DNA of 63,399 bases, the filler included, from Dimorphilus gyrociliatus (lineage: Eukaryota > Animalia > Annelida), in the NCBI GenBank assembly GCA_904063045.1. It is 4 parts of 4 records of this genome, joined end to end, with 100 filler letters (N's around TTAATTAATTAA, not from the genome) between each part and the next. Parts side by side here need not be neighbours in the genome. Positions count along the whole stretch, not along the records: positions 28,720 to 47,294 come from CAJFCJ010000195.1; 3 more parts are not named here. One strand, given 5' to 3'. The notes beneath the pieces were generated by a model. It was not told the DNA's origin. It saw nothing but the letters and a program-made list of their open reading frames with translations, and made no database searches. The first letter of the stretch is position 1; each line of letters starts with the position of its first letter. Below, in pieces: positions 28,720 to 47,294 of this stretch. Made by a program: the position numbers and the translations under genes.

Positions 28720-29935
28720 GAAAGATGATGAGTTTATTGCAGAAAAGAGAGACTCTGTTAGTATAACCAATGAAGAAAACAATCAACAAACCAAATCAAC
28801 TAATCTAGTATAGAAAGAAATAATGAACAAATAGTAAATACAGCTGAGGAAACCAAGAATAAAACAGCAACTGAAGAAAAGGATAAAAATGAGGAAGAAA
28901 GGTTTACAGATCAAATCAGTGTTGAAAATGATCTTACTGAAATGATGGAAACAGCTACAAATGAAAATGATAACAAATTTTGTTCAAGAGACATTTCAAA
29001 TGAGACAATCATGGTGCTTGTGATAAAGAATCTGTTGTTACAAAATTACATTTGTCAAAAAATTTGAATTAGGATCACCATTAAAAACATCTTCACCAAT
29101 AGAAACTACTAACAATATCTCCATTGATTCTAGTGAACTGGATTTGTTTGATGAAAAAGCCTGGTTGGCATTGGAAGAGATGAGGTCTCAAGATCACTGC
29201 AAAGAAGCAAAAAAAATGGGTATAGATGGAGCCAATGCACTTGTTTTGAGTATGACAGATTGCATCAAAAAATATAAGGGATGGAAAATGATATTGAGGA
29301 ACAATTATAGAAAAGATAAAAAGCTGATTGATATTTATAGAGAATGGGGAAAGATTTCTTGTCAGACAAGGAGGCAAAAAACTTTTCAAAGTTATTGCCA
29401 CAAATATACAAATGAAAACAGAATTTTTTATGATATCTGACAGTTCATTTAGAGATATTCAAGTCAAAACTATCTCAATATAGCCTCCAAATATAAAATT
29501 GCTAAAAATGGAATATTAATCAACATTAGCCAATTAAACTATGAAGATATTTTACCCATTTTAAATAAACTGGAATATTCAATGTCAATATATATTCATA
29601 CATACAAATTTAAATTCTCCTAAAAAACATATGGATTAGCAAAATTTCTAAAGAACAAGTATGGAACTTGCAAGAATGTGATCATAGCCATTCCATTTGG
29701 CACAAAACTATTTTCTGCATACAAAGATATTCAAATGGCAACTAAGAAACAAGCCACTGTTCTTGATATGACTGATATGAGAAAATTGGGATTTACAGAT
29801 AATCCAACTGGAAATTCGAAATGTAAACACCTGACAAAGAAGGCACAAGAATTTTCAATTGATTTAGTAATGAAAACTTTGCAGAATTATCAAAGATCAG
29901 AAAGAGGAAACAATGGACATAGATACATCAACTAA
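28720..29935 (+). CDS. ORF1 of element A: acidic N-part plus putative SGNH/GDSL esterase domain, frameshifted
   Basis: Joining frames gives RIFMISDSSFRDI (block I), ILINISQLNYED (II), YIFIHTNLN (III), KHLTKKAQ (V). Confidence 0.5.
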
Positions 29936-29946
29936 CAAGTATATTA

Positions 29947-32623
29947 ATGTCTGGATTTAATTTCTATAAACAATTAAATACTCAATATGTTGTTAATTTG
30001 AGCAAATATCAGATTCCAAATGATGTCAATAGTTTTTTTAATCTTGGTTTAAAGTTTGTACATGAAAGTATAAAACCAGACAAATGGAAGCAATACACAT
30101 TGTTCAATTTAGAGAGATTCTTTAAAAAAGTATCAATCATTAAAAAACAAAATAAATCAACAAATCTGGAAAATCTTAGATGTATTAACTATCAATGGAT
30201 ACCAAAAGAAGGATTTGAAAGAAATATAACATCTGTTGAAGAACTAGATGATACTGATGATGATGATGGTGGTGATGGTGACAGTGATGAAATGTTACAA
30301 TTTTTCAAAGGATGCAGAAAGGCAATTCAAAGTAATATTTTTAAAGAGAATTCTAATCAAAACTTGGAAAATTTGACAAAGATTTCTTTAAATCTCTGAG
30401 AAAGTTTTTATCATTAGACATTGTGATTAAGCCAGCTGACAAGGATCTTGTGTTGTGATACAAAATACTGAAGATTATATCTACATGTGCAATCAATTAC
30501 TTTCTGATAATAAACAATATTGTAAACTATCAACAACTTCTAATATAAATATTTCTGGTAATAAATTTTTAGAAAAGTCAATTTTCTATTATAAAGACCT
30601 AATTAAAACATTTAAAGTTACCTTGGATGAAAAAGAATATAAACATTTGTTGGATTCTCTGTGTACAAAGAAGCATTCTTTTGAGAATAGAATATTTTAT
30701 GGCTTACCTAAAATACATAAGGAACCAGAACAATGGTTGGTTGATGGTAAAATTCCTAAAGGAAGGCCTGTTGTTAGCAATTTAAGGACAGAATCTTATG
30801 AAATATCAAGATATATCTCACATCACCTCAAACCAATTAGTATACTACATTCTTCATATATTGGTAATTCTAAACAACTGTTGGATGAACTTAATAGAAT
30901 AACAATTCCAGATGATGCTCTTTTGGTGACTCTGGACATAAAAAGTATGTATACAAACATTGATACTTACACTGGATTGAAAGCTGTAAAATATTTTTTT
31001 GAAAAGTATTCCTACAAGCACAGACCTGATGATTTTCTTATTCAACTTCTCAAATTCAACTTGCATAAGAATCATTTTAAATTTTTAGATACAATATACT
31101 TACAAAAGAGTGGTTGTGCTATGGGTCAAAGTTATGCTCCTGCTTATGCAAACTTATGGATGGCTTGGGTGGAAGAAGTGTACCTCTTCAACATTAGACC
31201 TAAACCTCTATTTTATAAAAGATATTTGGATGATATTTTCCTAATTTGGACAGGTAGCATTGATACATTTCATAGCTATCTTCAAAAAGTCAATAATATA
31301 TTAAAAAATTTAAAGTTTGAGGGAACAACTAGTTTTCAATCAATCAACTTTTTAGATTTAATTCTATTTAAAGGAACAAGATTTCTCTCAACAAATCAAT
31401 TGGATCATCTAACTTTCTTCAAAAATTGTGAAACATTTCATCAACTTCATAGAACTTCTTTTCATCCTAAACATATCTTTAAAGGACTTTTAAAATCTCA
31501 ATTCAAAAGATTTCTTAATAACAGCTCCTCTCCATTTCTATTCTTTCAAACTTGTCAAACTGTGATGAAACCACTTTCCAGTCAAGGCTACAGTGCTAAA
31601 GAAATAAGAAAAGCAATACAGTCTGCAATTAAAGACCAAATGAAGAAAGAAAACTATGAAAGAGTGTTGGAAGAAAATAGAAAGACACAGTGGAATATTC
31701 CAAAGGAATTAAGAATATATTTTAACATAAGAAAAAAGATATTCTGCCCTCTAAACATGAATTTCATTTATAGGAAAAACTGTGTAGATTTAATTACAGA
31801 TAACTCAAAAGTATTTCTATTACAATGTAAAGAATGTGGACAAATGATGTACTTTTCTATACAACAACATAAAAAAATCAGCATCTTACAAACACTTAAA
31901 TACCTTCTATCAAGAAAATATTTGGAATTGAATAATATTGACCTAGTAGAAAACTATATCCAGCATCAACATTTTGCAGAAAATCAATTTAATATAACAA
32001 TATTTCCTTATGAACAATTGCAAAGAGATAAATCAACAATTGAAATGAACAGATATATTTATCACTTGAATATGAAAAATGTCATGTATTATCCCTTTGG
32101 CTTAGCCAGATATACCAGTTGTCCAGTATATTCAAAGCTACCATTAATTATGCCTTATAGAAATGATCATGGACCAGTGTTAAAAAAATTAACAAAAACC
32201 TATAAATTATTAAGTGATAAGAATTCCATATTTAAAAACATTCCTCTGATATTTGCTTTTACAAACAACATAAATAGTTATTTTCAATTAATTCATAAAA
32301 ACATTTATTTTAAACAGGAACAAAATATGTCTACTTCCTTATTTCATAAAAGAAATACAACTAGTACAGATTCATCAGAAAAATGTCATTTTTCACTAAA
32401 TAAAACAGGAACATCAACAATTAAACATTTTTATAAAAAGAAGAATGCAGAAGAAACATCTTCACTTAGTGCACCACCTCAACCAGGAAAAAAACCAAAG
32501 TTTGATACAATTACAAGAAAATTCACTATGAAGAGGAAGATGGAGAAGGAAACAGACGAACATAAACCAGTAGTTGCAGAGAAGATGGTTAGAACTGGAA
32601 GAAGAATTAAGAAGAAACTTTAA
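29947..32623 (+). CDS. Penelope-like reverse transcriptase with C-terminal degenerate GIY-YIG domain (element A)
   Basis: VVNLSKY..LGLKF, IKPADK, FYGLPKIHK..GRPVVS, LDIKSMYTNI, GCAMGQSYAPAYANLWM, RYLDDIF, INFLDL, HPKH..KSQ. Two 1-nt homopolymer deletions near 30373 and 30442 split it. Confidence 0.93.
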
Positions 32624-32713
32624 ACTTTCAATATTTTTTAATTAGTTGTTTTCCTTTGAATATTTGTTTTGTTTGCTTCATAATAATTTGCTTTTCACTG
32701 CATATATCTGTAC

Positions 32714-32758
<45 letters not shown>

Positions 32759-32863
32759 TATTCTATGTATTCTTAGATTTGTTCAGTTCATATCTATAAT
32801 ATTCTTTTTGTGTAGAATATACTAAATTTTACTAAATTATTTTGTTTTTATAGATTTTCTATA

Positions 32864-33927
32864 ATGGCAAATAATACTCCACAAAATCAAATTGAAAGAA
32901 TAGAAAATGATGCAATTCTTATCAATCAAATAATTGATATTGAACATTTTTTACCACCATCTTTTCAACAATTTTTTAACTTTGGAACATTTTATAATCA
33001 TCTTCAAAGATTTAGAAGAGATGACAGAAATCATCCTCCAATTTTTGATGCAAGTAAATTTGAAAAAGATACTGTAGACAAACTGATGAAATTTAAACAA
33101 TTTTGTGATGAAAAAATGTGGCTTGTTGAACAACACCAAGTAAATAATATAAATAAACAACAACTTGGAGAAGTGATATTAAGATATTTGAATGGTACTG
33201 ACCAGCTTGTAAGATTTAATAATACAATCAAAGTTAATAGAAGAAAACATTTCAATGTTGGTGAACTACTAGCATCTTTTGCAGATATTGGAGTGAATTT
33301 AACAGAAGGGGAAATGGAAAATCTTATGAAAATTCAACAACCAGCAGTGAAATTTACTACCAACTGTAATTTGCTTCTCTTAACAGATGCTAGTTTGAGT
33401 GATTTGGATTTGTTTCAAATAGAAGATGTTAAGAGGAATATCAATTTTCATGGAAATATTTTGATTGTAAATATTTGTGGATTAACATTTGAAAATTGCA
33501 AAGAAATTTATCAAAATGGAAGATAAAAACTAACATTGTAGCTCTACATATTCCTTTTGACACCATTAATGATATTGATGATAATTTTCCAGCTATTTAT
33601 CAAAGTAATGGAAATATTAAGGAATGTATGCTGTTTATATCATACAAAGTTCAGGATAATTTTAATAATCAACAATTTCTACCAGAAAGGTTAAAAAAAA
33701 TGTTTACAAATATTGTTTATATCAATGGCATTATAAGAGGAGATCCTTTTCATAGAAGACTCCAACAGGACAAGATATCTCCTTTAAGAAATATTGTTCA
33801 ACATTTAATTTTTAATGAGATATTAGTAAACACTAAAGATGTGATAGAACAACAACAAAGAAGAACTGGAAGAAGAAGATTAAACAGACAAGATATTCAG
33901 GCTATAGAGGAACAACACAATGAGTGA
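32864..33927 (+). CDS. ORF3 of element A (~350 aa after one frameshift), SGNH-like without the catalytic Ser
   Basis: Overlapping ORFs 32864-33526 and 33496-33927; homologous along its length to 42790-43860; LLTDASLSDL, ILIVNICGLTFEN, GDPFH motifs. Confidence 0.7.
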
Positions 33928-34961
33928 AATTAACAGACCTATCAAAACTAAATTTCAATCTCTGTATATTTTATATAAACACTTTGATATTTCTCTAGTT
34001 TAAAATAGTAATATTAGCATAATATAACTATGTATTTATATCAATGCAAAATTGATTAGGTGTGTGACACACTGGAATGCCAGAGGCTGACATATCACTT
34101 CTTATATAATACCAAATGTGTCTAGGCTTGGGATACTAAAACTTTTATGTAATACCAGATACTTGTCAAGATAAACTGACATATCTTAGGATATGTCAAT
34201 TACATAACACTCCTCTATATAAGCTACAAGGTCTATCAAACATCATCACTTCAAGAAAATTCTCAGAACAAGAAGGACTGCTCTCTACAAAAACTCTGTT
34301 TAGTGATTCAACATCTACATACTACAAAAGATCATTTTTCTACATCAAACAACTCTGAAAGAAAAAACAAAGTAAGCTATATGTTTGTTTGTTCATTTGA
34401 GAAATTAAAGATACTATAATGTTTTACATTTATGTATCTATTTGTTTATATATGTTCAGGTGACTTTAAGATGTTATAGTTGATTTTCATCAATTTCATT
34501 TCTTTCATTAACACTATAAGACCTGTCAGACAACTTGGATTATATATCTTGCTGTTTAACAGTTCAAAAATTGTTCAATGAGGAACAGGAACAAATGAAA
34601 ATTATAAACTCTGGCATCTTTTGTAAACATTATATACACATTGTACCTACATTATATCTAAACATACCAATAGGACAACAAAAAAAACCATTAGGCAAAT
34701 AACTATATATCAGACCAAAGAAAATTTCAATAACTGAAAAGTAAGCAACTAGATATTACAAAACAAAAGTCATCTTATTGACAAGTATTACAAAGAATCA
34801 ACTTCTATGGTTGATATTCATCCATACATATATAAACCTACAAATACACATACAATTTCAACATCCATACAACAAGAACATTCTTGCAAGGAAGGATTCA
34901 ATTATAAAATTGGTCCTCTCCTCCCCTTCAAGATAGTTCTTAGGTTATACTATCCTCTGAA

Positions 34962-35016
34962 TTGACCCTGATGAGTCTTTGCATTAAAAGGGGAAGACGA
35001 AACCATGGTAGGTCAA
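34962..35016 (+). ncRNA. Minimal type I hammerhead ribozyme 1
   Basis: TTGACC-CTGATGA-GTCTT..AAGAC-GAAA-CCATGG-TA-GGTCAA; predicted cleavage after GUA (35010). Confidence 0.93.
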
Positions 35017-35800
35017 CCATACTTGGCAACCATCTAGATTAATATATCCTAGGTTAAACATACTATTGCAATTTAAAACCAAATCAAAAACAAACAAACA
35101 GACATAAATTGATTAGTGATGGGAAGAGTACTTGTTTTAAAATGTACAATAAGTTCTTACTCTTGCATTCCATTTCATTATGGGATCTTCTGAAAGTTTG
35201 GTGGAAGTTATTTGACTTTCATCAGAACTGAGACCTTAGTGTCTAGTTCAAACCTATATAAAACCTAATCACAAGTAAGAAGAGTCAAGGGGTTTTGAGG
35301 AACAGTACAAGTTGAACTTAACATCTGATCATCACAAATTCAATCAAAAATTAAAAAACATCAACTTTTATCCATTCAAAACAAATAAAAAACATATTTA
35401 CACACAAACATACACACATGCATTCATTGTTAAAAACAAAAGTTCTTATGAATACCATATATAACCTCACAAATTATATAAAAAATTAGGCATCAAAATA
35501 CAACTATCTATATGACCAAAATCATCTTCATAATCCTAATAGGAAACAAACTAAAAAAATTACAAAAAAATTACAAAAAACAAATCTCAACTTGTTGACA
35601 ACTATTACAAAAATCAACTTCAATGGTTGATATATACATTCACAATCACACATACACCTACACATAATGATACATATACATACATATAACAATTTATGAT
35701 TAGGCTTATAACCAAAAACTTACTGCAGGGAAGGATTCAATTGTAGAATTGATCCTCTCCTCCCCTTCAAGATAGTTCTTAGGTTATACTATCCTCTGAA

Positions 35801-35855
35801 TTGACCCTGATGAGTCTTTGCATTAAAAGGGGAAGACGAAACCATGGTAGGTCAA
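35801..35855 (+). ncRNA. Hammerhead ribozyme 2
   Basis: Same sequence as ribozyme 1. Confidence 0.93.
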
Positions 35856-36639
35856 CCATACTTGGCAACCATCTAGATTAATATATCCTAGGTTAAACAT
35901 ACTATTGCAATTTAAAACCAAATCAAAAACAAACAAACAGACATAAATTGATTAGTGATGGGAAGAGTACTTGTTTTAAAATGTACAATAAGTTCTTACT
36001 CTTGCATTCCATTTCATTATGGGATCTTCTGAAAGTTTGGTGGAAGTTATTTGACTTTCATCAGAACTGAGACCTTAGTGTCTAGTTCAAACCTATATAA
36101 AACCTAATCACAAGTAAGAAGAGTCAAGGGGTTTTGAGGAACAGTACAAGTTGAACTTAACATCTGATCATCACAAATTCAATCAAAAATTAAAAAACAT
36201 CAACTTTTATCCATTCAAAACAAATAAAAAACATATTTACACACAAACATACACACATGCATTCATTGTTAAAAACAAAAGTTCTTATGAATACCATATA
36301 TAACCTCACAAATTATATAAAAAATTAGGCATCAAAATACAACTATCTATATGACCAAAATCATCTTCATAATCCTAATAGGAAACAAACTAAAAAAATT
36401 ACAAAAAAATTACAAAAAACAAATCTCAACTTGTTGACAACTATTACAAAAATCAACTTCAATGGTTGATATATACATTCACAATCACACATACACCTAC
36501 ACATAATGATACATATACATACATATAACAATTTATGATTAGGCTTATAACCAAAAACTTACTGCAGGGAAGGATTCAATTGTAGAATTGATCCTCTCCT
36601 CCCCTTCAAGATAGTTCTTAGGTTATACTATCCTCTGAA

Positions 36640-36694
36640 TTGACCCTGATGAGTCTTTGCATTAAAAGGGGAAGACGAAACCATGGTAGGTCAA
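36640..36694 (+). ncRNA. Hammerhead ribozyme 3
   Basis: Same sequence as ribozyme 1. Confidence 0.93.
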
Positions 36695-37478
36695 CCATAC
36701 TTGGCAACCATCTAGATTAATATATCCTAGGTTAAACATACTATTGCAATTTAAAACCAAATCAAAAACAAACAAACAGACATAAATTGATTAGTGATGG
36801 GAAGAGTACTTGTTTTAAAATGTACAATAAGTTCTTACTCTTGCATTCCATTTCATTATGGGATCTTCTGAAAGTTTGGTGGAAGTTATTTGACTTTCAT
36901 CAGAACTGAGACCTTAGTGTCTAGTTCAAACCTATATAAAACCTAATCACAAGTAAGAAGAGTCAAGGGGTTTTGAGGAACAGTACAAGTTGAACTTAAC
37001 ATCTGATCATCACAAATTCAATCAAAAATTAAAAAACATCAACTTTTATCCATTCAAAACAAATAAAAAACATATTTACACACAAACATACACACATGCA
37101 TTCATTGTTAAAAACAAAAGTTCTTATGAATACCATATATAACCTCACAAATTATATAAAAAATTAGGCATCAAAATACAACTATCTATATGACCAAAAT
37201 CATCTTCATAATCCTAATAGGAAACAAACTAAAAAAATTACAAAAAAATTACAAAAAACAAATCTCAACTTGTTGACAACTATTACAAAAATCAACTTCA
37301 ATGGTTGATATATACATTCACAATCACACATACACCTACACATAATGATACATATACATACATATAACAATTTATGATTAGGCTTATAACCAAAAACTTA
37401 CTGCAGGGAAGGATTCAATTGTAGAATTGATCCTCTCCTCCCCTTCAAGATAGTTCTTAGGTTATACTATCCTCTGAA

Positions 37479-37533
37479 TTGACCCTGATGAGTCTTTGCA
37501 TTAAAAGGGGAAGACGAAACCATGGTAGGTCAA
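37479..37533 (+). ncRNA. Hammerhead ribozyme 4
   Basis: Same sequence as ribozyme 1. Confidence 0.93.
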
Positions 37534-38317
37534 CCATACTTGGCAACCATCTAGATTAATATATCCTAGGTTAAACATACTATTGCAATTTAAAACCAAA
37601 TCAAAAACAAACAAACAGACATAAATTGATTAGTGATGGGAAGAGTACTTGTTTTAAAATGTACAATAAGTTCTTACTCTTGCATTCCATTTCATTATGG
37701 GATCTTCTGAAAGTTTGGTGGAAGTTATTTGACTTTCATCAGAACTGAGACCTTAGTGTCTAGTTCAAACCTATATAAAACCTAATCACAAGTAAGAAGA
37801 GTCAAGGGGTTTTGAGGAACAGTACAAGTTGAACTTAACATCTGATCATCACAAATTCAATCAAAAATTAAAAAACATCAACTTTTATCCATTCAAAACA
37901 AATAAAAAACATATTTACACACAAACATACACACATGCATTCATTGTTAAAAACAAAAGTTCTTATGAATACCATATATAACCTCACAAATTATATAAAA
38001 AATTAGGCATCAAAATACAACTATCTATATGACCAAAATCATCTTCATAATCCTAATAGGAAACAAACTAAAAAAATTACAAAAAAATTACAAAAAACAA
38101 ATCTCAACTTGTTGACAACTATTACAAAAATCAACTTCAATGGTTGATATATACATTCACAATCACACATACACCTACACATAATGATACATATACATAC
38201 ATATAACAATTTATGATTAGGCTTATAACCAAAAACTTACTGCAGGGAAGGATTCAATTGTAGAATTGATCCTCTCCTCCCCTTCAAGATAGTTCTTAGG
38301 TTATACTATCCTCTGAA

Positions 38318-38372
38318 TTGACCCTGATGAGTCTTTGCATTAAAAGGGGAAGACGAAACCATGGTAGGTCAA
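38318..38372 (+). ncRNA. Hammerhead ribozyme 5
   Basis: Same sequence as ribozyme 1. Confidence 0.93.
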
Positions 38373-38619
38373 CCATACTTGGCAACCATCTAGATTAATA
38401 TATCCTAGGTTAAACATACTATTGCAATTTAAAACCAAATCAAAAACAAACAAACAGACATAAATTGATTAGTGATGGGAAGAGTACTTGTTTTAAAATG
38501 TACAATAAGTTCTTACTCTTGCATTCCATTTCATTATGGGATCTTCTGAAAGTTTGGTGGAAGTTATTTGACTTTCATCAGAACTGAGACCTTAGTGTCT
38601 AGTTCAAACCTATATAAAA

Positions 38620-38669
38620 CCCTAACCTAACCCTAACCTAACCCTAACCTAACCCTAACCTAACCCTAA
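38620..38669 (+). repeat. Telomeric tract (CCCTAACCTAA)4CCCTAA
   Basis: Strict alternation of hexamer and pentamer, read directly. Confidence 0.9.
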
Positions 38670-38993
38670 GAACAGTACAAGTTGGATTCTATGTCTGATC
38701 ATCCAGCTTACAAAAAAATTAAAACAAAAATTATTACAAAACACAAAAATACTCATATGTTCATTCATGCAAACAAACATACATTGATTACAAAATTCAA
38801 CTTCCACAAGTTGATATTACAAAAAACACACACAAACATCATTAGACATACAGTTACAAAACATTCCCTCTTCCATTCAATATATACACATTCATCAATC
38901 TTATGACAAAAATGGAATGCAAGGCAGGATACAATTGCAGAATTGGTCCTGACCTCCCCTTCAAGGTAGTGTAAGTGAAGCTATCTTCTGAAA

Positions 38994-39043
38994 TGACCCT
39001 GATGAGTCTTTGCAAAAGGGGAAGACGAAACCATGGTAGGTCA
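38994..39043 (+). ncRNA. Hammerhead ribozyme 6
   Basis: TGACC-CTGATGA-GTCTT-TGCAAAAGGGG-AAGAC-GAAA-CCATGG-TA-GGTCA. Confidence 0.93.
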
Positions 39044-39599
39044 ACTATTCTTAGTAACCATCAAAAAATTAGAACAAAAACTGAACATTTTTTCATCAAT
39101 CAGTTGTAGATAGTCTTACTTGTACAGAGTGTTCTTACTCTTGCATTCCATACCATTGTGGAATCTCTTGAAACTTTGGTGGAAGTTATTCAACTTTCAT
39201 CAGAACTTAGATCTTAGTATCTAGTTCAACATTACAAAAACCTAATCAGAAGTAAGGAGAGTCAAGGGGTTTGAAGAACAGTACAAGTTGGATTCTATGT
39301 CTGATCATCCAGCTTACAAAAAAATTAAAACAAAAATTATTACAAAACACAAAAATACTCATATGTTCATTCATGCAAACAAACATACATTGATTACAAA
39401 ATTCAACTTCCACAAGTTGATATTACAAAAAACACACACAAACATCATTAGACATACAGTTACAAAACATTCCCTCTTCCATTCAATATATACACATTCA
39501 TCAATCTTATGACAAAAATGGAATGCAAGGCAGGATACAATTGCAGAATTGGTCCTGACCTCCCCTTCAAGGTAGTGTAAGTGAAGCTATCTTCTGAAA

Positions 39600-39649
39600 T
39601 GACCCTGATGAGTCTTTGCAAAAGGGGAAGACGAAACCATGGTAGGTCA
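39600..39649 (+). ncRNA. Hammerhead ribozyme 7
   Basis: Same sequence as ribozyme 6. Confidence 0.93.
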
Positions 39650-39946
39650 ACTATTCTTAGTAACCATCAAAAAATTAGAACAAAAACTGAACATTTTTTC
39701 ATCAATCAGTTGTAGATAGTCTTACTTGTACAGAGTGTTCTTACTCTTGCATTCCATACCATTGTGGAATCTCTTGAAACTTTGGTGGAAGTTATTCAAC
39801 TTTCATCAGAACTTAGATCTTAGTATCTAGTTCAACATTACAAAAACCCTAACCCTAGTTAGGTATTACACTGGAACACTAGCTAACCAGTTCCCAAAAA
39901 CATTACCAGAGTTGTGTGAGTGGCCTAACCCATAACCCTTACCAAA

Positions 39947-39987
39947 CCCTAACCCTAACCTAACCCTAACCTAACCCTAACCCCTAA
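39947..39987 (+). repeat. Telomeric tract capping the 5'-truncated element B
   Basis: CCCTAA CCCTAA CCTAA CCCTAA CCTAA CCCTAA CCCCTAA joined to RT coding sequence. Confidence 0.88.
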
Positions 39988-42574
39988 ATATCAAATACCC
40001 CATGATGTTAATAATTTCTTAAATCTTGGCTTAAAATTTGTTTATCAACTCATCAAAGAAAAGCAATGGAGAGAACAAGCTTTATTGAATTTAGAAAAAT
40101 TTTACAAAAAAATATCATTTTTGAAAAAGCAAAGTGTTAATTCAAATTCATCAAGTCTCAGATTCATCAATCACAAATGGAAACCCATACACCCTAAAGA
40201 GTATTGTAATCCAGTTATTGTTGAAAATGATGATGATGACAATGATACATTAATGAAACTTTTTAAAGAATGTAAATCTGCTATAAAGAAACATATTTTC
40301 AAAGAAAATAATGGTAAACTGCAAATGTTTGATAAGACATTTTTCTCTTCTCTTTCAAAATTTCTCTCACTAGATATTGTTATTAAGCCAGCTGATAAAG
40401 GATCTTGCATTGTTATACAAAACACTGATGATTATGTCACTATGTGTGAACAGCTTCTTTCAGACTCAAAACAGTATTCTGTCCTATCAACAATATCATG
40501 TAACCAAACAACAGAAAATGATAGCTTTTTAAAACAGTCTATTACTTATTATAAAAACTTGATAAAAAGATTCAAAGTTATGCTTAATGATGATGAATAT
40601 CAAGAACTGTTAGACTCTGTTTGTATGAAACAAAATTTAATCAAGCATAGGATATTTTATGGATTGCCAAAGATTCACAAAGAAAGAGATGAATGGCTTA
40701 TAAATGGAAAAATACCTAAAGGTAGACCTGTTGTAAGCAACTTGAGAACTGAATCCTATGAAATATCAAGATTTCTATCACACTACTTGAAACCAATTAG
40801 TACATTACATGCTTCCTATATTGACAACTCTCAAAATTTTTTAAATCAACTAAGTAGAATTAACATTCCCTCTGATGCTCTTCTTATAACACTTGATGTT
40901 AAAAATATGTACACAAATATTGATACATATACTGGTCTGAAAGCTGTCAAATACTTTTTTCAAAAGTACCCTTCAAACAATAGACCTGATGACTTTCTAA
41001 TAGAACTTCTCCAGTATAATTTGCACAAGAATCATTTTAAATTTTTAAACAAAATATTTCTTCAAAAATTTGGATGTGCTATGGTCAGAGTTATGCTCCA
41101 GCATATGCTAATTTATGGATGGCTTGGATTGAAGAAGTTTTTCTTTTTAATATAAAACCAAAGCCATTTTTCTATAAAAGATATTTAGATGATATCTTTC
41201 TGATTTGGACTGAAGGAGTTGAAAAATTTGTTAATTATCTTAGAAAAGCCAACAGTATTTTAAAGAATCTGAAATTCAAGGAAAAAATTAGCTCAACTTC
41301 AATCAACTTTCTTGATTTGGTTCTCTTTAAAGGAACAAGATTTCTGTCTTCCAATCATTTGGATCATATAACATACTTCAAAAAATGTGAAACATTTCAC
41401 CAGTTACATCGAAATTCTCTTCATCCAAAGCACACTTTTAAAGGATTGTTGAAAGCTCAATTTCAAAGACTTTTTAAAAATAGTTCCTCCAATGTTATTT
41501 TTTATCTAACCTGTCAAACTGTTATCCATCCACTCTTACAGCAAGGCTATCACCTAAAAGAAATAAGAAAAGCAATAAAATCTGTACTGAAAGATGATTT
41601 GTATAGAGAACACTGCCAGAGAGAATTAAAAGAAATATGTGAAAAAAACAATGACATACCTGTGAAGATGAAAATCTTTTTCAACATCTCAAGCAAAATA
41701 TATCATCCTCTTAAATTACAATTCCTTTATAGAAATGGTTATATTAATTTTTTGGCTGAAAAACCCCAGATTTACCTCCTTCAATGTAAAGAGTGTGGAC
41801 AGTTAATGTTTTTTTCCATTTTCCAAAAGTACACAGATGTGAATATTTTTGAAACACTTGATTATTTACTGTCAAGACAGTACTTGAAAATTAAAAATGA
41901 TGAACTAGTGGAGAATTTTATTGAACATGGTCATTTTAATGAAAATCAACAAAATATTACAATATTTCCATATGAACAAATACAAAAAGAAATGTCTCCA
42001 ATTGAAGTCTGTAAACATGTTTATATATTAAATACAAAATATATCATGTTTCATCCTTTTGGTTTGGCAAAATTCACTTCTTGCCAAAATTCAACAAAAT
42101 TACCATTCATTATACCTTTTGGAAACCAACTACAGCCATTGATTAAAAAAATTCATAAATGTTATTGTAAATTTAGAATAGAAAATCCCACTTTGAAAAA
42201 CCTTCATTTGATATTTGCTTATACCAACAACACAAATATATATGTAAAACTAATAAATACTAATACAAGCTATCAACAGCAACAAATTGAATCCACTTCT
42301 TTCGCTTGCTCCAAGAACAATAGCTCACATGATACAAGTACTGAAACATCTTTATTAGAAAAAGCCAAATTGCCAACAATCAAGAACTTCTACAAGAGGA
42401 CAACTTGTCAAAAAGAACCTTCTTACATTCCAGATAAGAAGCCAAAATTGGATGAAACAATCACCAGAAAGTTTAAATCCAATGAGCACAATGAAGGGAG
42501 TTGTGGAAAAAACAAGTGATCCACCTGTAATTAAAAGAACTGGAAGAAGAATTAAGAAGATAGCAAAAAATTAA
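39986..42574 (+). CDS. Penelope-like RT with degenerate GIY-YIG (element B), N-terminally truncated and frameshifted
   Basis: IKPADKG, FYGLPKIHK, LDVKNMYTNI, RYLDDIF, IYLLQCKECG. Missing G at ATGG(G)TCAG (~41083); a further shift near 42480 extends the tail to RTGRRIKKIAKN*. Confidence 0.92.
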
Positions 42575-42789
42575 ACAAAAACTTAATATTAGTTTCTTGT
42601 AGAACATAGAATTTGTTAAAGTTACCTTATGGTAAATTGTAGAAATAGTTAAAACATTTGTAAAAGTTGTAGGCAGTATGTGTAGAACTTCCACAAAGTA
42701 TACATTTATCCCAATATATATATAGAACACATTTTTGAAAAAATACATTTCATTAACCAGTTTGCTTCATTTAAAATAGGTTTATACCA

Positions 42790-43860
42790 ATGGCTTCAAG
42801 TAATCCAATTAATACAAATACTAAAGTGATCATTGAAAACTCAAAAAATGTGATTGCAAATAACATCAATGTTGACCATTTTCTTCCTTCTTCATTTCAA
42901 GACTTTTTCAACTTTCAATTGTATTACAATTGCATAAAAAAGTATATGAGAAATAAAGCCATCCAACCTCCACTATACAATGAGAAGGAACATGAAAAAG
43001 CTCTTCTTACCAAAATGTCACAATTCAAAGAATTTTGTAACAAGGAATTATGGCTAGTTGAACATAATGAACAGAAAAGATTTATTAACACAGAACATCT
43101 TGTTAACTTAATCTATGAGCATCTGAACAAAACAGACAACACTGTCAAACTTGAAAATTCTTTCAAATTAAACAGAAAAACAATTGACATCAGAGAAAAT
43201 ATTATACAGCAACTCCACAGAATTGGAATAAATTTGAGTGAAGATGAAGCTATAAATTCTTTTAAAATACAACAACCAGCAATCAACTTTCCAGATGTCT
43301 TGGATTTGCTAATCTTAAGTGATCATAGTTTGGAGATGTTGATTTGAATAATGTTAGACTTGTTCAGAACAACATCAGATTTCAAGGAAATATAATCATT
43401 TTGAATATTAAAGAATTGTCATTTGCCAACTGTAAAGAAATACTTTTAAACTGGAAGTTAAAAGCAAAGGTAGTTGTTTAAATGTTCCATTTCAAGAAGA
43501 ACATGACACTGATAAACACTTCTACCTGATATCAGAAAATAACTCAATAACAAACATATCATGTTGGTTCAAAAATATCAGCTTCAGAAATCTCCAATCA
43601 ACAACACATTCCAACATATCCTTCAGAAAATGTTTACAAATATTATCAATGTTAACCAAATGATAAAAGGAGACCCATTCCATGCAAGAATACCTCCAAC
43701 TAAATTATCACCTTTAAGGAATGCTGTTCAACAACTAATTATGAATGAAATTATCGTACAGCTCAAACCATTCTCAACCAACAAAACATCCAAAGAACTG
43801 GAAGGAAAAGAAAAAGATACAAGCCAATCAAAACAACAATCTTCAATCATAGGACTCTAA
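42790..43860 (+). CDS. ORF3 of element B, homologue of 32864-33927, frameshifted
   Basis: HFLPSSFQDFFNF, KEFCNKELWLVE, IQQPA, LILSDHSL, KMFTNI..GDPFH..SPLRN shared with A. Confidence 0.7.
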
Positions 43861-44074
43861 TAATTTAAAAATCACAGAACAATCAAAGTAAGTAAAAACT
43901 CTCATAGTCTAACAATGCTAACAATACCAATACTCAGTTACCACTTAGAATTAAATAAAAATAATATTGAGCAAAACTGTAAAGTAAAAGTAAATACAAA
44001 AAAAAATTGCTGGGAGTTGATACAATTCTAGAATTGATCTCTCCTCCCCTTGATTAGTATTCAAAACAATCGAA

Positions 44075-44123
44075 TGACCCTGATGAGTCTTTGCTAAAGG
44101 GAAGATGAAACCATGGTAGGTCA
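44075..44123 (+). ncRNA. Hammerhead ribozyme 8
   Basis: TGACC-CTGATGA-GTCTT..AAGAT (G-U closing pair)-GAAA-CCATGG-TA-GGTCA. Confidence 0.88.
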
Positions 44124-44665
44124 GTTACTCAAAAATATTTTCAAAAATTTTTTACATCATGAACCAGGATATTGTTTTCTCTGTCAAACCTGTGCAGGAG
44201 GTCCACACTCTTGCATTCCATTTGGAACTCCTGAAAATTGGTGGAAGCTACCAACTTTTACCAGGACTTAGATCATAGTGTCAAGTTCAACTTTTATTAA
44301 AACCTTACACAGAAGTATGGAGAGCCAAGGGGTTTTAAAGGACAGCACTAGTCTGATGGGCAAATCATACTCTGGTTCAAAAAAATTTTTTTCATTCAAA
44401 ACAAAAAAGCAATAAAAATATACAACAAAGCAAACTCAATCAAACCCATACACACTTATGCATACACTTATCACAAAAATCAACTTCAATAGTTGATATT
44501 GCACCCACACATACACATGCAACATTAGAGATACACTTAAAAAATTCCATCTAAATACATGCACCCAATCCTATAGCAAAAAATTAAATGCAAGGTGGGA
44601 TCCAGTTAAAGAATTGATCCTAGCCTCCCCTTCCAGATAGCAGTAAGAGAAGCTATACTCAGAAA

Positions 44666-44715
44666 TGACCCTGATGAGTCTTTGCTAAAGGGGAAGACGA
44701 AACCATGGTAGGTCA
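44666..44715 (+). ncRNA. Hammerhead ribozyme 9
   Basis: TGACC-CTGATGA-GTCTT..AAGAC-GAAA-CCATGG-TA-GGTCA. Confidence 0.93.
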
Positions 44716-44897
44716 GTTACTCAAAAAATATTTTTCAAAAAATTTTTTACATCATGAACCAGGATATTGTTTTCTCTGTCAAACCTGTGCAGGAGGTCCA
44801 CACTCTTGCATTCCATTTGGAACTCCTGAAAATTGGTGGAAGCTACCAACTTTTACCAGGACTTAGATCATAGTGTCAAGTTCAACTTTTATTAAAA

Positions 44898-45004
44898 CCC
44901 TAACCTAACCTAACCCTAACCTAACCCTAACCCTAACCTAACCCTAACCTAACCCTAACCTAACCCTAACCCCTAACCCTAACCTAACCTAACCCTAACC
45001 CTAA
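44898..45004 (+). repeat. Telomeric tract of 19 units (10 CCCTAA, 8 CCTAA, 1 CCCCTAA)
   Basis: Read directly; marks the boundary between the retroelement chain and AT-rich flank. Confidence 0.92.
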
Positions 45005-45869
45005 AATTTTTCATTATAGAGCTGTAAAGTTTTTTTTACATTAAACAAAAGTTAGCTAATACAATATTAATGTATTGAATAGGTTTTATATGTTACTTTC
45101 CTCTTTCTCAAATATATATATATATAATTGATTTCATTAAACATTGGAGAGATATATAAAGAATACTTTTATCAATTTAACCACAGCAAACCAAATGCTA
45201 CAATTCAAGATTCCTTTTAAAAGTATATAAAAATATTCAAAGGAATGATTTCCATCAGAACCAATAGAAAAAGTTTTGGGAAGAAGAGGTCTATAAGAAA
45301 AGGATTAAGACAATAAGAAAAATAAACATGGTAAATAAGAAAACAAGAAAAAGGAACAGGAGAAACAGAAGGAAAACAAGAAGAGAAACAAACTCACCAA
45401 AAGGATGAGCAAGCAGAAGAGGCAGAGATGAAGAAAGTGTTATTTATTTTGAAGAAATAGATATTAAAAAAAATGATAAAAATATATATTAACCAAGAAA
45501 TTTGATTCAAACATTTGATAAAAAATTGTTAAACTGAGAAGAATTGATCACTCTTACAAATAACTTTTGTTTTTAGCTAAAATTCATAAAAAAATATTAA
45601 TTATAGTAAAGAATGAAAAGTAATTATTATAAATTTAATACCAACAGCAAGACAGAATTGTAAAGTTATATTATATTATATATTTACTTTAAATTTCAAT
45701 TTTGCCTTAAACTTTAATATATTTTCTTTATACAATTCATCACATTTCTATTAATATTTTTGGAATAAGAAATATTTATGTATTATGCAGAACATCCCTC
45801 TAATTGTTATTATTTTTTCCTGACAATAATTTTGGTTCAAATTTGATCAAAATCGGCCCAGTAGTTGCT

Positions 45870-47130
45870 GAGATATGGATTATAAGAAACATTATATATC
45901 AACTCTATTAAAAGCTTATATAAACAAAAATATTCGATGTTCAAAAAAACTAAATTTGTTAATATAAAAGTCAGAGCTCTGAAATTTTGTACATATACTA
46001 ATATTGATATACCGATTATAAATCTTTTTACAGAATTCAATTATCTTTTATAGTTTGGGAGCTACGTTACGTTAAAGTTTGTATTAGAAGACTTTTTTTT
46101 TAAAAAAAAAGAAAAAAAAATTTTTCATCTTGAGTGATGTCTTAAAAAAAAAAGAACGGCGGTGGTGTCTGTTAATTAGTTTCAATATTACGAACTCAAT
46201 ATTATTTGGTCAGTCTGCCTACACCCCTACACATCAAAATGTAAGTAAAATTGTTAAATTACCCTGATTAATATCTGTTTTTGTAATTAATTTTTGTTGT
46301 ATTTTATCTATTAAAATATGTAGAATGTTATCTGTTGCTTTTTAATTATTTTATTCAATTACTTTACTTTAAATCCCATTAATTTCTGCCAAAAGACATA
46401 AGTTACTTTTGAACACTACATTAAATGTAAGCCTATAATCATATTTTCGTCACAAAATTTTAACTCTGTTATGAATTAAGTTAGAGCTTTGAAATTTGGT
46501 ACATAGATTGTTATTATTACGCCGATATTAAATCTTTTTACAGAACTCAATTATCTTTTACGGTTCAAAAGATATGGCGCCGTCAAGTTTTATTCATTAT
46601 TCTTTATTTGTGAGCCTATATGAAATATTCGATAGGGCTAATCTAACTCTGTTATTAATAATCATAAAGCTTTCAAAGTTGGAACATAGATTAATATTAG
46701 TGGGCCGATTAAAAATCCTTTTACAGAATTCAATTATCTTGTATGGTTCAAAAGTTATGGCGCCGTTAAATTCTGTTGCTATTTCTTCTCCATAGGTCTA
46801 TATAAAATATTCGTTAGGGTCGATAAAAGTTAGTTAATATGTACAATAGAGCTTTGAAATTCAGTTCATATAGTAATATTGGTAGGCCGATTTCAAATCC
46901 GTTTACAGAATTCAATTATCTCTTTTGGTTCAAAAGTTATGGCAACTTTATTTTTTCGTCAATACTTTGTATTTAGGCCTTAAAAAATATTTGTCATCTG
47001 AAAACTAACTTTCTTATTAGTTAGCTTAGAGCTTTGAAACTTGGTATATAGACTAATTTTGGTATGCCGATCTCAAATCTGCTTACAGAATCCAAATATC
47101 AGTTACCGTTTTTGAGCTATTTACAATTAA
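45870..47130 (+). repeat. Diverged ~180-bp tandem repeats (subtelomeric satellite or non-autonomous element)
   Basis: AGAGCTTTGAAATT..GCCGAT..TTACAGAATTCAATTATC recurs at 46031, 46541, 46724, 46906, 47086. Confidence 0.75.
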
Positions 47131-47294
47131 AGTGTTTTACAGTTTGCTGTTATAAATATTTTTATTGTTATGATATTGTTGTGTTCAAAAGTTAATTGTT
47201 ATGAATGTAAGAGTGTTTGAATTGTATATTGGAGTTTTAGTGTGCTTTTTAATAATTTGATTGTAATTATCTGTTTTTAATTAAGATAAAGCTT

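Follow-up and report, generated by a model that had tools for sequence, protein, structure and literature searches.

The locus described here raises a question: what serves as the template when a retroelement ends in several identical, ribozyme-bearing units that sit on telomere repeats? It lies in a 63,399-nt stretch of DNA from the annelid Dimorphilus gyrociliatus (assembly GCA_904063045.1), which we call the window, and the piece we analysed covers window positions 28720–47294 (CAJFCJ010000195.1). The piece holds Penelope-like elements. For the way in which tandem copies form in such elements, and in retrozymes, the circular-RNA model of 2014 is a hypothesis. The question is easier to test at this locus, where the telomere target and the AAAACC at which copying would start are exact and the ribozymes delimit the template unit.

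The locus is a subterminal head-to-tail chain of Penelope-like retroelements on telomere repeats. The piece is AT-rich (GC of about 25–34%) and all of its element features are on the + strand. In chain order we find element 1 (open reading frames (ORFs) plus a tail of 839-bp units), M606 (606-bp units) and element 3, or family B (5'-truncated, with 592-bp units). C-strand telomere repeats stand between the elements, and every element is trailed by them on the sense strand. With the C-rich strand as the sense strand, the chromosome end is on the left and the elements have their 3' ends innermost.

The body of element 1 takes up 28720–34913, with its 5' end lost at the edge of the piece, and is followed by a perfect tandem array of 839-bp non-coding units, array A (34914–38621, 4.42 units), which ends at AAAACC where telomere repeats start. 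When array A is shifted by 839 bp, there are 0 mismatches over all 3708 bp, which bears out the exact repetition described in the first-pass annotation. Just upstream, the 3' untranslated region (UTR) includes a partial unit that we call X' (about 34660–34913, found by comparison with the unit). X' is only about 70–75% identical to the matching part of the unit, X, or about 28% diverged, and has many indels. The change to 100% identity at 34914 is abrupt: 11 differences from the unit fall in the preceding 45 nt (34869–34913), and the last is at 34913. The first-pass annotation was right about this diverged upstream unit; it had put the last difference at about 34912.

Identical repeats are also found in the other two elements. 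M606 (38670–39846) is made of units only, 1.94 of them at 606 bp; it starts with GAACAG, ends with AAAACC, and has two hammerhead ribozymes (HHR) and no ORF. Its positions 38670–39240 show 0 differences from the sequence 606 bp later (571 nt). The tail of element 3 (39988–44895) is ordered X'-HHR'-Y-X-HHR-Y, and its unit measures 592 bp between the cut sites at 44118 and 44710, or 591 bp by core positions. Here X' has diverged almost beyond alignment outside the ribozyme block. The last substitution between the first and second unit is at 44106, 12 nt before the cut, as had been noted earlier. The earlier statement that the sequence downstream is the same holds only in part, since the repeated Y (186 nt) has three single-base homopolymer-length differences at 44131–44150, followed by about 165 identical nt. 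There is no ORF longer than 55 aa inside array A, and none longer than 74 aa in the units of all three families. Every unit has one minimal type-I hammerhead, several conserved hairpins and the telomere-like seed AAAACCTAA. Because the tandem architecture recurs in three elements with sensible ends, we consider the architecture itself to be genuine and not an artefact.

We located five identical hammerheads in array A, in agreement with the five ribozymes at 839-bp spacing reported before. The first is at 34962–35016, with a predicted cut after GTA at 35010, and the other four are at 35801–35855, 36640–36694, 37479–37533 and 38318–38372. Their CTGATGA cores start at 34968, 35807, 36646, 37485 and 38324, and the predicted cuts follow the first at +839 steps, with a GTA triplet throughout. 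M606 has hammerheads at 38994–39043 and 39600–39649 (cores at 38999 and 39605, cuts after 39038 and 39644), and B has them at 44075–44123 and 44666–44715 (cores at 44080 and 44671, cuts after 44118 and 44710). A search of the window for the core pattern (CTGATGAG, a gap, and CGAAAC) gave eight matches against 0.00 expected from shuffles, and the ninth hammerhead (44080) falls outside the pattern solely through a C-to-T change. In that copy a G.U replaces the G-C closing stem II and the loop is 1 nt shorter. This G.U is the sole deviation among the nine copies from the catalytic core CUGAUGA...GAAA with its G10.1-C11.1 helix II pair.

Helix I is open and has 5–6 bp (TTGACC/GGTCAA in array A, TGACC/GGTCA in the others), and helix II has 5 bp (GUCUU/AAGAC, or GTCTT/AAGAC in the DNA) with a loop of 10–14 nt. 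After GAAA comes ACCAUGGU and then A, and cleavage is expected after GUA (an NUH triplet). Helix III is an A-U and a C-G pair around the palindromic loop CAUG, and the palindrome ACCATGGT is present in all nine ribozymes. With ViennaRNA, the array A dimer folds at -39.2 kcal/mol versus 2 x -13.7 for the monomers, with similar results for the other variants; the predicted dimer has an 8-bp intermolecular helix III and swapped helix I strands. The palindromic stem III had been pointed out earlier, together with the view that such minimal hammerheads of Penelope-like elements cleave as dimers, and the fold prediction has two copies pairing through it. Cervera and de la Pena (2014) argued for dimer action of the minimal Penelope-type hammerhead and measured low activity for it in vitro (PMC4209133; see also PMC7761336). 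Going by their sequence, we take the motifs to be minimal type-I Penelope-type hammerheads with all core nucleotides present, and cleavage is predicted.

Rfam found no ribozyme family in the whole piece at E up to 1. In a local scan of 34930–35040, the two best matches are both hammerhead families and both below the gathering score: RAGATH-1-hammerhead with 17.3 bits (cut-off 56.3) and Hammerhead_3 with 15.3 bits (cut-off 48.5). A score below threshold is expected for hammerhead variants without helix III. Across the three unit families the ribozyme differs only by an indel and one substitution in loop 2. Because it is otherwise invariant while mean column identity among the units is only 68%, the comparison points to selection acting on the ribozyme. 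Scans of contigs from metagenomes, viruses and prokaryote genomes for the exact hammerhead pattern gave 0 matches. On the minus strand, the conserved TCATCAG (35219 and its repeats) was considered as a possible hammerhead and rejected, because GAAA and helix II are both missing and B does not conserve the motif. Further small hairpins are conserved across the three unit families and are present in every unit, for example at 35598–35625 (ATCAAC...GTTGAT) and 35731–35757. The latter reads GGA-TCAATT-GTAG-AATTGA-TCC, lies just upstream of a CT-rich box and the ribozyme, and has compensatory-looking changes in B. These hairpins may be protein-binding or folding elements.

All three elements stop at one phase, with AAAACC as the last bases of the element and CTAA as the next. 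AAAACC followed by CTAACC has three matches versus 0.01 expected. The corresponding internal site in the arrays, AAAACCTAA in A and M606 and AAAACCTTA in B, amounts to a one-repeat telomere-like seed. The 3' terminus of each element is formed by a conserved block of the unit (38510–38621, 39732–39846 and 44790–44899), in which about 110 conserved nt are predicted to form two hairpins and, after them, an A-rich single strand with AAAACC as its last bases; this fold is a prediction with one compensatory change in its support. Telomere repeats start 255 nt past the cut site in A, 202 nt in M606 and 186 nt in B. Having the 3' end innermost is as expected if the G-overhang primes complementary DNA (cDNA) synthesis on the element RNA, and agrees with the geometry reported for Athena, Coprina and Terminon elements (PMC8557442, PMC6431247). 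In this respect the earlier proposal that copying starts from the telomere fits well, as the 3' ends of the elements do sit first on C-strand telomere repeats.

The telomere tracts at 38618–38669, 39924–39987 and 44896–45005 combine CCCTAA and CCTAA units. The first, which separates element 1 from M606, is a perfect 11-mer alternation, (AACCCTAACCT) x 4.7. M606 is followed by a short tract (39847–39860) and, beyond a 63-nt insert, by one that is degenerate and then regular (39924–39987). The innermost tract (44896–45005) is an irregular mix. The host telomerase may make both TTAGGG and TTAGG, or its template may permit slippage.

M606 has the look of a telomere addition of the retrozyme type, made of units alone, and there are other readings. 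It may be what erosion has left of a longer element, because the distal (5') side of every terminal addition can erode before the next capping. Its GAACAG start lies 33 nt beyond the end-point phase, directly after the conserved block, and could be a transcription start, a stop of the reverse transcriptase (RT) or a healed break. As a promoter for this 5' end we considered a TATA box at TATATAAA before the end point, and rejected it because M606 and B do not conserve it and its distance of about 46 nt is too great. We also rejected a 30-nt mini-intron (from the conserved GTAAG to the CAG past the end point), which is too short and does not suit the M606 5' end.

A divergence of 0% versus about 28% inside one element shows that the tail is regenerated by something. 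Identical repeats next to a diverged X' therefore favour the view that the repeated part is remade from one unit, and often. The first-pass annotation had argued for amplification from a single unit, and identical units beside a diverged proximal partial unit do call for it. Base-for-base linear inheritance is disfavoured because the copies would have drifted as X' and X did. Since none of the three elements stops at a single unit and the repeats are identical in each, the process looks systematic and not sporadic.

The reading we favour, at somewhat less than an even chance, is that the tail is regenerated at the level of reverse transcription from a one-unit template. Most of that chance goes to rolling-circle copying of a circular RNA, which when taken by itself we would call doubtful. 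Copying would begin when the G-rich telomere overhang pairs at AAAACC and is extended by the RT of the element. Such pairing would explain why three families that are about 30% diverged share one exact end phase. The repeated part of the tail would then be rebuilt at each retrotransposition from a one-unit template; in the form we favour, this is a hammerhead-cut and ligated circular monomer that is copied for more than one round (1.3 in B, 4.3 in A). The cDNA would finally move over to the coding RNA, with its own older X', through homology in the vicinity of the conserved ribozyme block. A variant would have repeated switching among identical linear monomers.

The ribozymes bound exactly one unit. 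The four internal junctions at cut sites are all scar-free, for which a continuous template is a better fit than end-to-end jumps. Rolling-circle copying would also fit tails of 1.3 and 4.3 units that end at one phase. To explain tandem Penelope-like elements, Cervera and de la Pena (2014) suggested that circular RNAs are reverse-transcribed beyond one unit (PMC4209133), and animals express circular RNAs from repeats flanked by hammerheads, 150 to >1000 nt in length (PMC7229834, PMC7761336). The full scheme would have a telomerase-like RT with a dead nuclease, primed by the G-overhang, use a ribozyme-made circular RNA as an endless template and then switch to the coding RNA. We see this as possible, though on the unlikely side. 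An earlier suggestion was already that a cut-to-cut monomer circle is copied in rounds. The DNA is compatible with this, but a linear multimer, monomer jumps and unequal exchange fit it too.

There are several points that weigh against regeneration by reverse transcription, and against a circular template in particular. The only biochemical study of a Penelope-like element, made on the endonuclease-bearing PAc, found that hammerhead cleavage was dispensable for insertion in vitro, that reverse transcription began internally on unprocessed multimeric RNA, and that no RNA-seq reads ended at the cut site (PMC11167929); it counts against the circular model as a general rule. At our locus, array A alone goes beyond two units, and its growth to 4.4 units may be a single DNA-level event. 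The two Y copies of B differ at three of their four longest homopolymers, and the 11 runs (of at least 5 nt) per unit in A are all equal; either B truly has these differences or polishing made the runs of A uniform. The units are rich in A and their folds are weakly stable (z of -1.75 and -2.44), unlike compact retrozyme circles.

The switch point belongs with these points. The first-pass annotation had the RT jump at the ribozyme, and this is not supported, as the identity boundaries differ (-97 from the cut in A, -12 to +13 or beyond in B). In A, the 97 nt from 34914 to the cut (35010) are identical to the unit, though this stretch varies between families. The switch in A can lie anywhere to the right of 34913, and the last exchange left its footprint 97 nt before the cut and not at the cut itself. 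In B, the boundary is beyond the cut if the homopolymer differences at +13 to +32 are real. A and B share no boundary point, each boundary limiting the switch on one side only, and therefore the ribozyme cut has no special status. Both A and B are explained if homology guides the switch to some place within the conserved ribozyme block.

The repeated part could instead have been amplified as DNA, an explanation that we rate as rather unlikely. In this case the tail would have about 1.3 units at insertion (HHR'-Y-X-HHR-Y, as in B), A would have grown to 4.4 units by unequal sister-chromatid exchange or replication slippage, and gene conversion would keep the copies identical. It suits the fact that array A alone exceeds two units, and each unequal exchange would add one identical unit and leave X' untouched, producing the abrupt boundary at 34914. 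Subterminal arrays are also prone to recombination. For vertebrate retrozymes, a preprint appeals to unequal crossover after tandems have formed (bioRxiv 10.64898/2026.07.22.740005). However, DNA-level amplification by itself leaves unexplained that substitutions are also lacking between the two copies in M606 (571 nt) and in B (186 nt), given the divergence of about 28% in X', and it would need frequent conversion limited to one segment in three separate elements. We think it improbable that the array is simply a read-through copy, with a multi-unit master transcribed into the telomere repeats and the RT starting at the last AAAACC, or in the repeats, and copying an uncleaved multimer, so that the ribozymes play no role in the array. 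This is the scenario drawn for PAc, with its multimeric mRNA, internal initiation and dispensable cleavage (PMC11167929). The common junction after AAAACC in three diverged families could then be inherited, and transcription could start at the GAACAG that opens M606, 33 nt beyond the end-point phase. However, a linear copy just shifts the origin of the identical units to the master. If there is no homogenising step, the units would diverge like X' and X, and internal starts on a multimer would only preserve or reduce the number of units over generations.

Part of the pattern could also come from the assembly itself. The tandem would be real, but the 4.42 copies or their perfect identity would be due to expansion by the assembler or to multiply mapped reads during polishing. 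About 48 homopolymer runs (of at least 5 nt) are all equal in A versus three of four differing in B, and ORF frame breaks such as GGG to GG at 41083 would suit noisy long reads. B is the innermost and presumably the oldest element, and one option is that it carries real slippage mutations. We still consider an artefact very improbable, since single long reads easily span the 3.7-kb array, the same architecture is found in three independent elements, the M606 copies are identical too, and the ends of the array are defined and biologically sensible (the X' boundary and the family-wide telomere phase).

The enzyme that would do the copying is encoded by a 722-aa ORF of element 1 (30455–32623), which homologue search and protein alignment identify as a Penelope-like RT with aligned RT motifs and a relic GIY-YIG region. 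The best match is P0001 (CAD5126909.1), also from Dimorphilus gyrociliatus, with 46% identity and an E of 9e-146. Behind it are hundreds of RT + GIY-YIG elements at 31–45% identity, the next with an E of about 1e-83. We found 554 RT homologues and took architectures and residue counts from 120 of them, most of which have the RT + GIY-YIG architecture. Searches of the window ORFs against Pfam and PDB sequences gave no matches.

The RT alignment extends through the GIY-YIG region of endonuclease-bearing relatives, and this region alone matches the nuclease domain of P0002 (BLASTP E 2e-5). The GIY Tyr, two Cys, the Tyr and Gly of YIG, and the Thr, Arg, Glu and Asn are conserved together in about 113 of the 120 homologues. 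Element 1, element 3 and P0001 retain only the two Cys (and the first Tyr in element 3), the others being replaced, and the terminal GLN motif reads GLA in the relic region. The window RTs thus have a recognisable C-terminal GIY-YIG domain with replaced catalytic residues in place of the intact nuclease of canonical endonuclease-bearing elements (Penelope/Poseidon, Neptune, Nematis), and the nuclease is probably inactive though the domain is conserved.

The RTs of element 1, element 3 and P0001 form one clade in a tree of the sequences returned (support of 100 in the Shimodaira-Hasegawa-like approximate likelihood ratio test, SH-aLRT). A profile search of 1.84 billion representative proteins gave P0001 at 1047 bits and P0121 at 629 bits, followed by a drop to 343 bits. 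P0121, from an 8.3-kb contig of a Logan assembly, has the same relic motifs, and P0121 and P0001 are both long (1327 and 1212 aa) with large N-terminal extensions. The relic-nuclease lineage is deep and, with just two more members in a search of that size, rare. We found no RT relatives in metagenome contigs.

In element 1, a region homologous to the N-terminal part of P0001 lies at 29243–30399 (tblastn of P0001). By alignment with P0001, the coding frame changes from 2 to 1 at about 29875–29947 and back to 2 between about 30150 and 30431. These frame changes (29875–30455) could be programmed frameshifting, short introns or sequencing errors. The accessory ORFs of element 1 (32864–33927) overlap in different frames, at 32864–33526 (220 aa) and 33496–33927 (143 aa). 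They are conserved in element 3, with a ratio of nonsynonymous to synonymous substitution rates (dN/dS) of 0.25–0.40 and saturated dS. We found no homologue of them in Pfam, in the ESM Atlas or by word search (the Atlas and word search being for 32864–33526).

Element 3 is truncated at its 5' end inside the ORF, at a point that aligns with about 30029 of element 1, to which it has about 70% identity. Its RT is at 40085–42519 and its accessory ORFs at 42790–43860. At 41083, a 1-nt deletion in a G run (GGG to GG) falls within the RT motif that reads GCAMGQSYAP in element 1, and splits the RT into two frames. This may be a real defect of a dead copy or a homopolymer sequencing error.

Both ORF-bearing elements have intron-like segments in their 3' UTRs, at 34372–34459 (88 nt) in element 1 and 43888–43937 (50 nt) in element 3, each with a GTAAG start, a T-rich interior amid A-rich sequence and a CAG end. 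Penelope-like elements are known for the peculiarity of retaining introns. Element 1 also has a (TA)22 microsatellite (32717–32761) between its RT and accessory ORFs; there Rfam gave only spurious microRNA-like matches. We looked for a 5' copy of the unit upstream of the element 1 ORFs and rejected it, as 28720–29300 shows no similarity, though the true 5' end is outside the piece.

The 63-nt insert between the telomere tracts downstream of M606 (39861–39923) opens with an inverted TTAGGT directly after CCCTAG and resembles nothing else in the piece. Another element, truncated to an extreme degree, may have been added here, or the insert may be filler DNA. To the right of the innermost telomere tract is non-element DNA with a tandem satellite of about 182 bp (45923–47130, copies 62–76% identical), which is probably a subtelomeric satellite.

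Telomere-attached hammerhead Penelope-like elements are already known (PMC8557442, PMC6431247), as is the circular-RNA model (PMC4209133). What is new is that a rare relic-nuclease clade sits at telomeres, and that the tail consists of whole tandem ribozyme units, with the telomere junction 186–255 nt from the ribozyme. The contrast in divergence within one element is also new, and makes the template question tractable genome-wide: comparing sister insertions across the genome could separate circular from linear templates without wet work. If the full scheme is true, chromosome ends would be extended by rolling-circle reverse transcription on a circular, ribozyme-processed template, which would be a direct link among Penelope-like elements, retrozymes and telomere addition.

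Among the closest known systems are Athena/Terminon of bdelloid rotifers and Coprina of fungi, protists and plants. As in these, the elements form head-to-tail chains with 5' truncation, have short reverse-complement telomere tracts at their 3' ends and hammerheads near the 3' end, and carry extra ORFs beside the RT (PMC8557442, PMC6431247). Athena and Coprina are described as being entirely without an endonuclease domain (PMC8557442), whereas here a degenerate GIY-YIG persists in the window copies, P0001 and P0121. A lineage with a kept but catalytically degenerate GIY-YIG looks like a route to telomere specialisation that differs from that of the domain-less Athena and Coprina. In the known systems telomere repeats are directly downstream of the hammerhead (PMC6431247), while here they come 186–255 nt on, past two conserved hairpins. 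The tail is also different in that complete units follow one another in tandem, as many as 4.4 in array A. Of the sequences returned, which included no named Athena or Coprina sequence, P0001 and P0121 are the only ones with which the RTs in the window group.

The ribozymes are like those in the pseudo-long terminal repeats (pLTRs) of canonical Penelope-like elements (Cervera and de la Pena 2014; Lunse et al. 2017), being type I with a 2-bp helix III, a palindromic loop and a predicted dimer, and a partial-tandem arrangement with hammerheads is common to both (PMC4209133, PMC7761336). However, the canonical repeat includes the ORF (pLTR-ORF-pLTR), and here only a short non-coding unit downstream of the ORFs is repeated. 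Canonical elements insert at internal AT-rich sites, driven by their nuclease, while the target here is the telomere. Metazoan non-LTR retrozymes also consist of non-coding tandem repeats with one type-I hammerhead each, and are thought to give monomeric circular RNAs and to be mobilised by Penelope-like elements (PMC7229834); a 2026 preprint derives animal retrozymes from pLTRs (bioRxiv 10.64898/2026.07.22.740005). Retrozyme units have about 150–400 nt versus 592–839 nt here. Unlike retrozymes, the units at our locus are attached to an ORF-bearing autonomous element in two of three cases (M606 having no ORF), with a weak predicted fold and a minimal ribozyme, and a circle is only predicted. 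Finally, as with telomerase and with HeT-A/TART/TAHRE of Drosophila, the chromosome end would be extended by an RT from its terminal 3' end, and Penelope-like RTs are the sister group of telomerase RT (PMC8557442). Telomerase differs in using a short internal template in a dedicated RNA, and HeT-A and TART in being like long interspersed nuclear elements (LINEs), with poly(A) and without a ribozyme.

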